Shown here: piece after piece, positions 622 to 6,833 of the stretch
Layout of the letters: each line of letters begins with the position of its first letter
How positions within the stretch are numbered: the stretch's first letter is position 1
NCBI GenBank assembly: GCA_964199315.1
Contig: OZ116699.1
Location: 13,082,001 to 13,146,000 of the forward strand
DNA length: 64,000 nucleotides
Reading direction: 5' to 3'
DNA from: Orbicella franksi
Lineage: Eukaryota
The notes under the pieces: model-generated
The model's input: the letters and a program-made list of their open reading frames with translations, nothing else
Told to the model about the DNA's origin: nothing
Database searches by the model: none
Translations under genes and position numbers: made by a program

Positions 622-3600
622 GTAAGTTACAGATTGGAACCAGGGGAGAACGGGCTAGGCTTATATAACTATGACAATAGAAACTTTCATTAGAAGTGAA
701 GAAACAGAAACTATTGCGGAACTTTATCACCAGTTTAAGTGAACAAAAATAACGAATCGATGATTAATTAGATTGCTGAATTTTCCTCTGTTTTCTTCCG
801 GATGAGAGCCAAGACCTGACGGTTACAACTGACGAATAATTCGGTATTGGAGTGTTAGGGTAACGTTCATTAATACTTTGGAAGTGGCAAGGCTATATGT
901 GATACCGACTGGATAAACCGATACGGTGTACTTAACTTGAGACTAGGACAGAGAACAAACTTAAATGGAAGCTGATCTATATGTTTGTCAACAGGAAACA
1001 AAGTAAAGCTCTCCTCTGATGACAGCAGACTGACATTTGACGACAAGTCCGAATCACGTGGTCTTTTCACAGTTGTCCAAGCTGACGACAAGAAGATTAT
1101 TAAAGCAAACAGCGCCGGATTGCTGGGTCAAGGTGTCCTCATTGTTCGTGTTCACAACGTTTACAATGTCCGCGTCACAGTAAATGTGGTGGGTTACTCT
1201 TCGCTACAGTTAACAGCTGTTCCTTATCCAGTCATTGAAGGATCGAATGCCACTTTGACGTCGTTGAAGCGTATAGGAAGTCTCCATGGAAACGTCCAGT
1301 TGGCTGCTCTCAAGCTATGCCTCGTTTTGACGGATAAGTCCACCACCGATGTTTCCACGATGACGTCGACATCATTTCGTGTCGTAAGCAATGACGTAGG
1401 AGTTAAAGTTTCCATGGATTCTATTCCTAAGAACGTGCTGTTTATAGACAGGACGAGCACAAGCGGGTACATGAGCTTTCGTGGGCAGTTCTCCGGTAAA
1501 GAGTCGGGGAATCTTGTTCTCGAAGTTTCAACGGAAGTAATAACAGTTAATGAAATCCTTGCCGTGGAAATAATCGGGCTCAGGAATCAAACTCTTTTGG
1601 GTCCAGTGTTGTCCACGCAGGCCCAGGTTCAAGTAGACTTTGTTATGAATGATAGCTCTGTGCTTAGAGTGCAAAATTTCTCCGCAATCTCTGGACTTGT
1701 AGCATTTAAAATCAGTCACGAAAAAGCAGCTTCGGTTGACCGCGTGACGGGGGTTGTTATGCTGCTGTCAGACTATCATGACTTGGTGACCGTGACAGTC
1801 ACTCCGTTTCAGGGTCTTGGAAAACCAAAGCATGTGCAATTGTATTGTAACACAGTCCCACCAGTGGGTGGTGTTGACATTGGACAGGAGTACGGCCCAG
1901 CAGTACCAGCATTAATAGCTAACCAGAGAGTTACCATTCCTTTACGCGTGAATCCTGGCAAATCAAAACTTCTTGCCTTTGATTTGAAGATTTTGTACGA
2001 TGATCGCCAAGTTCGGTTTGTTGAACTGAAAAGAAGCAGTGCCTACTCCCACACTAAAGGACAACTGCATTTAGCTGATGTGACAAATCCCGATGATGCA
2101 AGTCCGCATGTTGCTGACCTGGTTTTCGATTCATTAGTCGACGGCGTGCTTAGCATCCAAGCCTCGGTGAACATGTTAATTGACAAAAGGCTGGGATTCA
2201 TTGGGAACTTTGCACCAGCTGTGACGTCATGCAATGCGCTACCGCTGGGCGATGCTAACGCGGATTGTGTGTTCGATATCCGGGACGCTGCTTTCACAAT
2301 GGCATATAGTCTAGCACAGGAAAAGAACTTCGTCGGTGAATTTGAGCAAACGATGTCAAAAAGCACGACTGATACAATGGTAAGTATCTTATATTAGTAA
2401 AAAAAAAATGTCAGAAGATGTGAAAAGAAAGTACTTTAGAAGCTTAGATAGCATATAGGAAAGTCCGGGGTCTACTGACATACATATAACAGTTTATTTT
2501 GATTCGAATTCGTTTATGTTTTTTTTGATCCAAAATAGCAGCCAGGAAGGTGTTATTCGATTGTATACATGTGTCTATGAATTTTAAGACTCTCTGTGTC
2601 CCTTAGTTCTCTTAGAGGCACCATGATAAAATTAGAAATAGTTAACAAGCATTTTCTTTTTGCTCAAATCCTTTTGTTTTCTTTCTTTTTTTTCTTAAAG
2701 CAACAAATTATGGACTTCAATCTCAATGGAGTCGTAGAACGAAATGACGCCTATCTGCTAGCTCGTGCGAATATGGACATGGTGCGATTCGTTCGTTCCC
2801 TTCACGTGAACTTCCCTGATCACCAGAATAAATCAACAGATTGCGCACTTGAAGTAACAGCCAAGCTAAGCACAAGAGATGGAAAGATGGAAACAGATTC
2901 AAACACGAAAGTGTACTTCGAATTTGCCAGCAGGGAGAAGGTCTTGAGCTTGCAACTTATGGGCACCTCATTCGACTCCGGAGAGCTGATAACAACGTAC
3001 GATAACCTGAACGAATTATTTGGAGGCATCGTGAAGGCGGAGAGTCGAGACGAAAGTTTTCATGTGATGGCTAAAAACTCCAAGATAGAAATTTCAAACA
3101 TGGGTTTGTCAATGATTCAAGTTACCCAGGATGCTCTGCGCCAGGCAGTAGTGACTCCGCTGTTCAAGTTCTCGCGCGTTCCAATGTTCTCTACAACACT
3201 CCAAGTCCAGTTGTCACCAAATGCTGATATGGTGATAAGGAGTGGCCATTCATCTCAGTTGACGGTCAACGTTACAGAGTCCTATGCAACATGTCAAGAT
3301 CCACCTGATACGAAGAACGTCATGTTTGTCTTTGAAAACGATTTTACCGAAGTCGAAGGCAACGAAGACTCTTTTGCAAAAACTATTATTACGGACTTAA
3401 CGGCGAGATTCCCATGGGCGAAGATTGGTAACATGAGATTTGCACGCGGAAGCATACTGGTTTATTTTGACATCACAACCCAGACATCCCGGATGGACAA
3501 AACTCTCGTTGCATTATGGGATATGTTGAAGTCAGGGTATACTGTGCGTGTCAACAGCAATGAGTATCAAGCGCAAAAAGTCATGCGCGTAGACGGGGAG

Positions 3601-6600: not shown

Positions 6601-6833
6601 GCGTAACAGTGACATCATTGACCTGGGTTATTTAAAATTAAATTTACACTAGGACCAAAGAGATCTCTTTTTCTTCTACAGAAGCAGCCCAGCTGTTCTG
6701 TCCGTGTGGCGCTGTGGCTCATTTCCAGTGCTCTGCTTGCTGCAAACGTGGTTACTGTGGCCGTGATTGCCAATCGAAGGACTGGCGCCACCATAAGAAC
6801 ACATGTGAATCTGAACAGGTTTCCAGTGTTTAA
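1..6833 (+). CDS. Giant coherin-type cadherin, 5'-partial (about 1,398 aa visible): cadherin repeats, BIG/TMEM132-like region, cohesin, dockerin, SEA-like domain, TM, cytoplasmic Ubl-like domain and MYND finger. Exons <1-621, 995-2379, 2701-4462, 5557-5835, 6682-6833
   Basis: The frame is open from base 3 ([19 protein letters not shown]...). Cadherin Ca-binding motifs are present (LDYE, VNEFPP, ATDKD, NVND). Donors: GTAAGT at 622, 2380 and 4463, GTTAGA at 5836. Acceptors end at 994 (CAACAG), 2700 (polypyrimidine+AAG), 5556 and 6681 (polypyrimidine+CAG). Phases 1,0,1,1 all match, and the spliced length from base 3 is 4197 nt = 1399 codons ending in TAA at 6831-6833. Confidence 0.88.
995..2379 (+). 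CDS. Exon encoding BIG/TMEM132-like beta domains, a cohesin-like domain (about 1897-2205) and the first dockerin Ca-loop (2251-2286)
   Basis: [33 protein letters not shown] resembles cohesin strands. [14 protein letters not shown] matches the dockerin DxNxDxxxxxxD loop. Confidence 0.8.
2701..4462 (+). CDS. Exon encoding the second dockerin loop, a SEA-like domain, the TM helix (3661-3729) and the Ser/basic-rich cytoplasmic region
   Basis: [13 protein letters not shown] (2713-2751); [10 protein letters not shown] (from 3439); [23 protein letters not shown] followed by RKRIKSRK; donor C|GTAAGT at 4462/4463. Confidence 0.85.
5557..5835 (+). CDS. Exon encoding a predicted ubiquitin-like (beta-grasp) cytoplasmic domain
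   Basis: Strong polypyrimidine+CAG acceptor. Phase matches both neighbours. [24 protein letters not shown]...VFLFQD gives a beta-beta-alpha-beta pattern. Confidence 0.7.
5948..6397. mobile_element. Non-autonomous TTAA-targeting DNA element (Kolobok-like), in the last intron of the cadherin
   Basis: Perfect 11-bp TIR GGTCATTCCAC / GTGGAATGACC, flanked by TTAA at 5944-5947 and 6398-6401. RR termini with a TTAA TSD fit Kolobok. Confidence 0.7.
6682..6833 (+). CDS. Terminal exon encoding a MYND-type zinc finger (not in the ORF track)
   Basis: Translates as (E)[49 protein letters not shown], containing the YC-x3-CQ-x3-W-x2-H-x3-C MYND signature. The acceptor TCTCTTTTTCTTCTACAG is in phase 1. Confidence 0.88.

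Follow-up and report, generated by a model that had tools for sequence, protein, structure and literature searches.

Predicted self-cleaving SEA domain and conserved ubiquitin-like/MYND tail of a putative fibrocystin-L-type surface protein in Orbicella franksi

The 64,000-nucleotide stretch of Orbicella franksi DNA analyzed here (assembly GCA_964199315.1, contig OZ116699.1, positions 13,082,001 to 13,146,000; hereafter the window) carries at bases 1-6833 of its plus strand the 3' end, i.e. the last six exons, of a gene that would, as judged from its sequence, encode an anthozoan giant surface protein with a fibrocystin-L-type ectodomain followed by cadherin repeats; the exons upstream of the window are assigned to it by their position on the same strand. 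A sequence-only reading of this region had listed a SEA cleavage motif, a transmembrane (TM) helix, basic patches, the CtBP motif PLDLS and a MYND finger, and had combined them into a Notch-like signaling route. All of these features are genuine, conserved and under selection; overlooked had been a folded ubiquitin-like domain (UBL), a PDZ-type C-terminus and the fibrocystin-L kinship of the protein. The juxtamembrane module is probably a divergent SEA domain, predicted from its fold and its invariant G-S to be self-cleaving, and we give about an even chance to the view that the tail behind it acts mainly as a membrane-tethered adaptor platform. Coordinates refer to the plus strand of the window unless stated otherwise.

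The juxtamembrane SEA-fold module

Exon 3 (2701-4462; 587 aa), which is supported by the gene model, RNA contigs and 36 orthologous exon open reading frames (ORFs), encodes a pre-SEA ectodomain module, the SEA domain, the TM helix and a cytoplasmic portion of 244 aa. A HMMER search with this exon retrieved 58 relatives; the alignment of the SEA region comprised window positions 3268-3654 and 42 homologues (43 sequences in total) with identities down to 21%. For positions 3295-3618, AlphaFold2 predicted a SEA-fold domain of the order beta-alpha-beta-beta-alpha-beta (predicted local distance difference test, pLDDT, 86), in line with the structure matches given below. The glycine and the serine of FARG-SILV are the sole invariant columns among the 43 aligned sequences: In the model, this G-S dipeptide (3448-3453; motif GSILV at 3448-3462) is placed between strands beta2 (52-59) and beta3 (62-72), and distant homologues exhibit GSIVV, GSVVV or GSIIS at the same position. 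By its invariance and its place in the model, the dipeptide is the putative site of SEA autoproteolysis (G|SILV). The SEA cleavage motif proposed in the sequence-only reading is thus borne out, as the model shows a SEA fold with the invariant G-S at the point where SEA domains autoproteolyse.

A wide structure search (VIA-align, 48,161 PDB representatives) returned MUC16 SEA5 as the best match (Z 9.2) together with a second MUC16 entry (chain 8gkl, Z 9.1), followed by TROP-2 (Z 8.5 and 8.4), the murine MUC16-like SEA domain 1ivz (Z 8.3) and SorCS2 (Z 8.2); lower values were obtained for TMPRSS6 (Z 7.7), Gpr126 (Z 7.5) and the SEA domain of a membrane protease, 2e7v (Z 7.2). Named SEA domains or the MUC16 epitope accounted for five of the ten top PDB entries, Gpr126 being counted by the reading of its matched range, residues 368-503, which we take to be its SEA region. 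Several results speak against this assignment. The top Z scores (8-9) exceed the tool's stated background of 7-8 only slightly; the Pfam SEA family (PF01390) had no match at E<=1 in the exon-3 translation of the window; and the 43-homologue profile, when compared with the PDB sequences, recovered no solved SEA domain and noise only. Pfam SEA did produce weak, sub-threshold matches in three of the 43 family members (best E 0.014). A Foldseek search against the PDB gave nothing at E <= 0.001 and otherwise generic ferredoxin-like folds, with MUC16 SEA5 at rank 13. A divergent, probably autoproteolytic SEA domain is nevertheless the best reading of the module, because SEA domains cluster among the structure matches and because the G-S dipeptide is invariant at the canonical cleavage turn.

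Ahead of the SEA domain lies a conserved module of 190 aa, homologues of which occur in many large proteins; Pfam finds nothing in the 587 aa of exon 3. On another contig (locus L016, G000:C6:31274952-31275287, minus strand), an open frame of 1020 aa includes a paralogous SEA module with 31% identity. This locus resembles the approximately 1000-aa single-exon homologues P0007 and P0016, which contain a Dockerin_1 domain above Pfam's threshold directly ahead of the part that aligns with exon 3.

Folded domains, end motif and conserved islands of the tail

The single TM helix, rich in Val, Ile and Thr (3661-3729, from the translation), is separated from the putative G|S cut by an extracellular stub of approximately 70 aa. 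It is conserved in 37 orthologues, i.e. the window and 36 orthologous exon-3 copies (36-99% identity, depending on the measure) taken from metagenome and transcriptome assemblies of coral type, and V323, C327 and V328 of the helix are invariant in a seven-sequence alignment. Directly after the Cys-Phe-Cys that closes the helix, a conserved juxtamembrane basic block of 12 residues follows (3730-3765), which is kept in the 37 orthologues, the adjoining cysteines less so. The combination of cysteines and basic block resembles, as a likeness only, the ciliary targeting sequence of vertebrate fibrocystin with its palmitoylated Cys and KTRK (PMC2812845).

Exon 5 (5557-5835), supported by the gene model and the structure model, encodes the folded UBL of the beta-grasp type (AlphaFold2 pLDDT 84). 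Nearly all of its 50 best PDB matches were ubiquitin or ubiquitin-like (Z 6.6-8.4; best match the UBL of USP7 at Z 8.4), and the AlphaFold Database matches included KIN-10A and SPATA1 (TM-score 0.66-0.72). A profile hidden Markov model of the exon finds the hemichordate protein P0027 with an E-value of 7.7e-7 (58 proteins searched). The genome contains the ubiquitin-like exon once; no Pfam family matches it, and Protein Atlas offered weak ubiquitin-family leads only (<0.9). In one divergent locus, a one-base frameshift interrupts this exon (L002:9559-9561), which is likely an assembly error since the contig coverage amounts to 1.95x.

The last exon (exon 6, 6682-6833; supported by Pfam and by RNA contig ends) comprises the MYND zinc finger, the terminal EQVSSV and the stop codon. 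The finger (6705-6806) scores 28.7 bits against the Pfam zf-MYND cut-off of 22.7 (PF01753), and all eight zinc ligands (C4-C2HC) are present in the arrangement C-P-C ... C-SA-C ... YC-GRD-CQ ... W-RH-H-KNT-C; the first pair is C-x-C rather than C-x2-C, in cnidarians and hemichordates alike. With 62-80% identity of this exon in four other lineages, a score above the family threshold and conservation as far as the hemichordates, the C-terminal MYND finger noted from the sequence holds. Binding of the finger to a PxLxP motif of its own tail was considered and rejected, as no such motif occurs in any of the four reconstructed tails. A complex prediction of the finger (with two Zn) and a 42-aa island scored 0.02 and has no weight either way.

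Immediately before the stop codon, the protein ends in VSSV (6819-6830), a class-I PDZ-binding motif ([S/T]-x-V-COOH) conserved in five of five lineages: EQVSSV in the window, EQVSTV in L001, EEVSCV in L002, EEVSSV in L003 and EDVTVV in L005. These four divergent genomic loci contain all downstream exons in the same order (exon 4 of L005 was recovered only by reading frames), so the architecture of the tail is conserved as a whole. The small exon 4 (5195-5320), spliced in RNA contigs of three runs and conserved in L001-L003, is Ser-rich and continues with STPR...SLPPGF; an interpretation of SLPPGF as a PPxY/WW motif was discarded, its last residue being Phe, Tyr or Val by lineage, or the motif being absent.

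Between the TM helix and the folded domains, a linker of 287 aa extends (21% Ser, 12 S/T-P sites, net charge +17) that would be disordered, as far as its composition alone indicates. Conservation within it is concentrated in islands, whose mean identities were computed on 27 non-redundant orthologues: a 20-residue island with KRKLRK (3958-4017; 0.86-0.90), an island with PLDLS at 4192-4206 (4171-4227), of which a 9-mer reaches 0.94, the highest value of the exon-3 tail, and a 15-residue island with HKRLRP (4408-4452; 0.86, the value also of its stretch EKAVLHKRL). The translations at FARGSILV (3439-3462), the TM helix, KRKLRK (3958-3975) and PLDLS were exact at the positions claimed beforehand, and the remaining basic patches were placed at 4216-4245 and, for HKRLRP, at 4435-4452 (positions calculated from the exon-3 frame). 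The alignment of orthologues, which had been suggested as a check, did reveal PLDLS, KRKLRK and HKRL as conserved islands across the 37 sequences. With regard to a putative nuclear localization signal (NLS), the observations are mixed: KRKLRK, nearly invariant among the scleractinian-level orthologues, and HKRL belong to conserved islands, but the strict pattern K-[KR]-x-[KR] is not conserved in its position in the divergent lineages.

For the CtBP-type core, the ELM pattern LIG_CtBP_PxDLS_1 was applied in the form P-[LVIPME]-[DENS]-[LM]-[VASTRG]. Among the 37 sequences, the five residues read PLDLS in 16 cases, PLNLS in seven, PLELS, PINLS, PLGLS and LLDLS in two each and PFDLS, PLHLS, PLDMT, PLNLT, PLNIS and PFNLS in one each; accordingly, 29 of the 37 match the pattern, which is broken in the other eight (LLDLS, PLGLS, PLHLS, PFDLS, PFNLS, PLNIS). 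As the distant orthologues mostly have Asn at the Asp position, exact PLDLS would seem to be a lineage-specific form of a consensus PL[D/N]LS. PLNLS is a documented CtBP1/2-binding motif in ZNF750 (PMC4173152). Shuffling of the 429-aa tail reproduced exact PLDLS in 0.07% of cases; any match to the ELM pattern, however, was found in approximately 10% of the shuffled tails, and a single match is therefore weak when taken alone. Pure chance in a disordered tail was rejected as an explanation of PLDLS, the island being the best-conserved part of that tail: The motif emphasized in the sequence-only reading persists as a conserved PL[D/N]LS, beyond what a 5-mer would yield by chance, and represents a putative CtBP site.

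Possible modes of action of the tail

On the reading that we favor, the tail would function mainly as a membrane-tethered adaptor platform behind a self-cleaving SEA domain. Autoproteolysis at G|S would take place in the secretory pathway, the huge ectodomain being then held non-covalently until it is pulled off or shed under load; the PDZ ligand would anchor the tail at a submembrane scaffold, the ancient UBL-MYND pair would recruit a partner with a proline motif, and phosphorylatable islands including PL[D/N]LS might dock further factors, one of them possibly of the CtBP family. Release of the tail by a sheddase and gamma-secretase is possible and is required by none of the observations reported here. 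A membrane-tethered scaffold accounts for the PDZ-type end and the UBL no less well than a Notch-like model does. The pairing of a membrane-adjacent SEA-like domain with a PDZ-binding tail in the tip-link cadherins CDH23 and PCDH15 also agrees with the platform. Against the platform, it has to be considered that a deep function would have to be attributed, from the sequences compared, to the UBL-MYND pair alone, the hemichordate proteins being without the PDZ ligand and without the PL[D/N]LS and KRKLRK islands. Moreover, the best-known occurrences of MYND fingers and PxDLS motifs are in co-repressor complexes of the nucleus, a point in favor of the nuclear alternative.

In that alternative, put forward in the sequence-only reading and in our estimation unlikely, SEA cleavage or shedding together with gamma-secretase would free an intracellular domain of approximately 430 aa, which the basic patches would direct to the nucleus, where it would serve as a co-repressor scaffold through PL[D/N]LS-CtBP contacts and a MYND-bound co-repressor of the PxLxP type. 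The analogy with Notch is reasonable as such, because Notch-like processing has been reported for vertebrate fibrocystin, with a tail that reaches the nucleus (PMC13424714), and because SEA-like modules can replace Notch's switch: The SEA fold with its structured neighbor is the arrangement of those modules which replaced the negative regulatory region (NRR) of Notch in the SNAPS assay (PMC6586460). The location of PL[D/N]LS in the top island of the tail, with the ELM pattern fitted by most orthologues and PLNLS a known binder of CtBP1/2 (PMC4173152), the near-invariance of KRKLRK at the scleractinian level and the conserved MYND finger point in the same direction. The stub left behind the G|S cut, on the other hand, measures approximately 70 aa. 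Since gamma-secretase prefers shorter stubs, an additional sheddase cut would probably be needed. For the metalloprotease (S2) and gamma-secretase (S3) cuts of Notch-like receptors, there is no signature in the sequence. Further points against a nuclear route are that the strict NLS pattern is not kept in position in divergent lineages, that eight of the 37 cores break the CtBP pattern (P-to-L, D-to-G and D-to-H replacements included), that the hemichordate tails contain neither the island nor the basic patch, and that the conserved PDZ-binding end suggests tethering to the membrane. A crude six-frame scan of the genome with PF02826 found other 2-hydroxyacid dehydrogenase-like exons and picked out no recognizable CtBP gene, from which absence of such a gene does not follow; the C5 exons among these matches were read by eye as presumably phosphoglycerate-dehydrogenase-like. 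CtBP-family proteins, in addition, also work outside the nucleus (RIBEYE, PMC10760060), and the platform model and the Notch-like nuclear model are not mutually exclusive.

Two further explanations concern parts or all of the tail. With regard to the sub-question of the top island, we hold it to be somewhat less than evenly probable that its resemblance to PxDLS is coincidental and that SSTEGS-P-L-x-L-SP, followed by TPKR, constitutes a phosphorylation-regulated docking or degradation motif (for a proline-directed kinase, a phospho-binding module or similar). Conservation indeed extends beyond the 5-mer: SSTEGS and the Pro after LS are conserved at >=0.9, whereas the Asp position has the lowest value in the island (0.5) and tolerates Gly, His and Glu, as the Pro position tolerates Leu; the 12 S/T-P sites of the linker and the frequency with which shuffled tails match the ELM pattern are consistent with this explanation as well. 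However, Asp, Asn and Glu together make up most states at the variable position and are all accepted in known CtBP motifs, the core residues P, L, L and S are each conserved at >=0.8, and no other motif class was matched convincingly. As to the tail in its entirety, it might mainly direct the protein to a sensory organelle (cilium or stereovillar cone) and keep it there, the juxtamembrane block acting in targeting, the PDZ end in retention and the UBL-MYND pair in chaperone or transport coupling; this we regard as quite improbable. Links to cilia are known for several MYND proteins, namely ZMYND10, ZMYND12 and ANKMY2. The conserved juxtamembrane block with its likeness to the palmitoylated Cys and KTRK of fibrocystin (PMC2812845) and the localization of vertebrate fibrocystin-L on stereocilia (PMC6707252, PMC11527881) are in agreement with such a role, but basic stop-transfer stretches commonly follow TM helices, the juxtamembrane cysteines are not invariant, and the strongly conserved mid-tail islands would be left unexplained.

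Gene model, kinship and comparison with known systems

The six exons form a single ORF of 1440 codons that ends with TAA at 6831-6833, and all introns are of the GT..AG type. The window begins inside exon 1 (1-621), which encodes cadherin repeats (Pfam Cadherin, 103.6 bits) and is spliced to exon 2 in the RNA contigs X2 and X9; exon 2 (995-2379; ORF and splice sites) codes for ectodomain without a Pfam match, is colinear in the same two contigs and shares 44-73% identity with the loci L001, L002 and L005. X2 (5552 nt) and X9 (4582 nt), which originate from two studies, contain exons 1 to 5 colinearly: Joints at 620/994, 4462/5195 and 5319/5556 are recorded for X2/X9, and 2379/2701 is represented by adjacent pieces of one contig. 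Behind 5835, the loose ends of both contigs match 6682-6711, i.e. 30 nt of the MYND exon (X9 exactly, X2 with one mismatch), and in contig X1 of a third study the joints 4462/5195 and 5319/5556 were seen. Because X2 and X9 run through exons 1-5 and have MYND-exon ends, the TM helix, the tail and the MYND finger are placed on one transcript.

Within the intron between the ubiquitin-like and the MYND exon, a pile-up of RNA contigs of 32-38 nt was observed at 5941-5990, with a word depth of approximately 225-360 per short contig and a summed maximum of approximately 2000 at one position (exons: approximately 17-196). The stretch is GC-rich (ttgcgcataatttcacacgtgattagcgcgcgcgc...), and ORF P0126 of another assembly reaches from the ubiquitin-like exon into comparable sequence; a repeat, a small RNA or a promoter of its own could account for the pile-up. 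Further downstream, the window contains an intronless 317-aa ORF at 23072-24025 (+) which by eye resembles a rhodopsin-type G-protein-coupled receptor (GPCR). In locus L005, a 7tm_1 gene likewise follows the MYND exon at a distance of a few kb, which suggests conserved synteny. Transposon-gene-like ORFs were recognized by eye at 31400-33590 and 52957-54875, comprising a 443-aa Harbinger/PIF-type transposase (-) adjoining a 224-aa Myb/SANT-like ORF (+) and three consecutive ORFs (+) like a broken hAT-type transposase. A 447-aa ORF at 48438-49781 (+) is, likewise by eye, Ser-rich in its first half and consists of ankyrin-like repeats in its second.

The kinship of the protein is indicated by two observations: The SEA-TM module is matched by the very C-terminal end of proteins named fibrocystin-L-like by NCBI (from Glandiceps, an acorn worm, and Lingula, a brachiopod), and exons for TIG, G8 and CEMIP beta-helix domains, the hallmarks of fibrocystin-type proteins, are located on the same strand upstream of the window, at a distance of 10-40 kb. 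The hemichordate fibrocystin-L-like proteins (Glandiceps talaboti XP_077992871.1, Ptychodera flava, Saccoglossus kowalevskii) share with the coral protein the TM helix, a Ser-rich linker ending with NTP.R.P...LPPG, the UBL and a MYND finger with the FC.CGAVAH knuckle; NTPVRSP...SLPPG, which precedes their UBL, is similar to coral exon 4. Their MYND finger reaches 33.3 bits in the hemichordate homologue, and PF01753 is already listed on the hemichordate proteins by automatic annotation. The SEA motif is kept in Glandiceps and Ptychodera (GSIVV, GSILV), whereas the Saccoglossus model is without G-S. Unlike the coral protein, the hemichordate proteins are devoid of the PL[D/N]LS island, the KRKLRK island and the PDZ-type end, and their listed domains include no cadherin. 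Amphioxus homologues retain GSVVV, the TM helix and SPPGY; the next stretch aligns weakly with the UBL (E ~1), and the gene models end without a MYND finger. When the hemichordate tail was used as query for full-length relatives from other phyla, the three hemichordates alone were returned, and annotated full-length cnidarian proteins were not among the search matches.

Since the hemichordates share the UBL-MYND pair and not the other motifs, this pair would represent the ancient core of the tail, the PL[D/N]LS and KRKLRK motifs being cnidarian additions. In a recent review, the long signaling tail of fibrocystin is considered a vertebrate novelty and the near-tailless fibrocystin-L the ancestral form (PMC13424714). 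As fibrocystin-L-type proteins of cnidarians and hemichordates carry a long UBL-MYND tail, the ancestral protein may instead have signaled via its tail. An extended scenario, which we consider distinctly improbable in its entirety, would be the following: The ancestor of cnidarians and deuterostomes possessed a fibrocystin-L with a UBL-MYND signaling tail, to which the anthozoans added the CtBP-binding PL[D/N]LS and a basic import signal; force acting on the giant cadherin/fibrocystin ectodomain would part the SEA halves, a sheddase and gamma-secretase would free the tail as a nuclear co-repressor scaffold, and this contact- or mechano-sensing route parallel to Notch would have been lost in vertebrate PKHD1L1 with the shrinkage of the tail to 6-9 residues. 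Little is understood of fibrocystin, which is associated with kidney disease, or of fibrocystin-L, associated with deafness. The extras of the coral protein (cadherin repeats, CtBP-type motif, PDZ ligand) offer sharply defined mutations for testing whether a giant adhesion protein of an early-branching animal communicates with the nucleus.

The literature searches gave no description of a fibrocystin-L-type protein with a UBL-MYND tail. Two vertebrate proteins are among its nearest known counterparts. Fibrocystin/polyductin (PKHD1) belongs to the same family of giant type-I proteins, with an ectodomain of IPT/TIG, G8 and beta-helix parts, SEA before the TM helix and a long cytoplasmic tail that begins with a Cys-plus-basic block (PMC2812845); gamma-secretase is reported to free this tail in a Notch-like processing, and a conserved ectodomain region is common to fibrocystin and fibrocystin-L (PMC13424714). 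In contrast to the coral protein, the PKHD1 tail is a low-complexity sequence of 192 aa described as vertebrate-only, and no UBL, MYND, PxDLS, PDZ end or cadherin repeats are listed for the protein in the domain table and text consulted; between the PKHD1 and coral tails, no sequence similarity was found. Fibrocystin-L (PKHD1L1), a coat protein of stereocilia (PMC6707252, PMC11527881), likewise contains a SEA-like (MAD) domain and is presumably shed (PMC11527881), its cytoplasmic tail comprising merely 6-9 aa (PMC11527881, PMC13424714) versus approximately 430 aa with folded domains, in addition to cadherin repeats, in the coral protein.

Outside this family, MUC1, MUC16 and the SEA-type membrane proteases exhibit the same ferredoxin-like SEA domain beside the membrane with G|S[VI]xV at the beta2/beta3 turn, but their tails are unrelated and there is no match at the sequence level. 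The C-terminal subunit of MUC1 also signals from its tail. The tip-link cadherins PCDH15 and CDH23 differ from the coral protein in having no fibrocystin-type ectodomain, UBL or MYND finger. In both of them, a membrane-adjacent SEA-like domain occurs together with a PDZ-binding tail; autoproteolysis at a G-S is not known for their membrane-adjacent (MAD) domains. Like the coral protein, they combine a long cadherin ectodomain with this SEA-like (MAD) domain, which is usable as a proteolytic switch, and the SEA-like modules of PCDH15, CDHR2 and dystroglycan can stand in for the switch of Notch (PMC6586460). Notch itself corresponds to the coral protein in its type-I topology, in a SEA-like juxtamembrane module after a structured domain and in a tail with basic patches and interaction modules; unlike the coral SEA domain, its SEA-like domain is without the autoproteolytic G-S (PMC6586460), and the coral protein, known here from sequence and models, is without the LNR, RAM, ankyrin and PEST parts of Notch. 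The component families of the coral protein (SEA, MYND, ubiquitin-like, PDZ ligand) are thus known, and a SEA-bearing type-I receptor with a signaling tail is known from fibrocystin, MUC1 and Notch.

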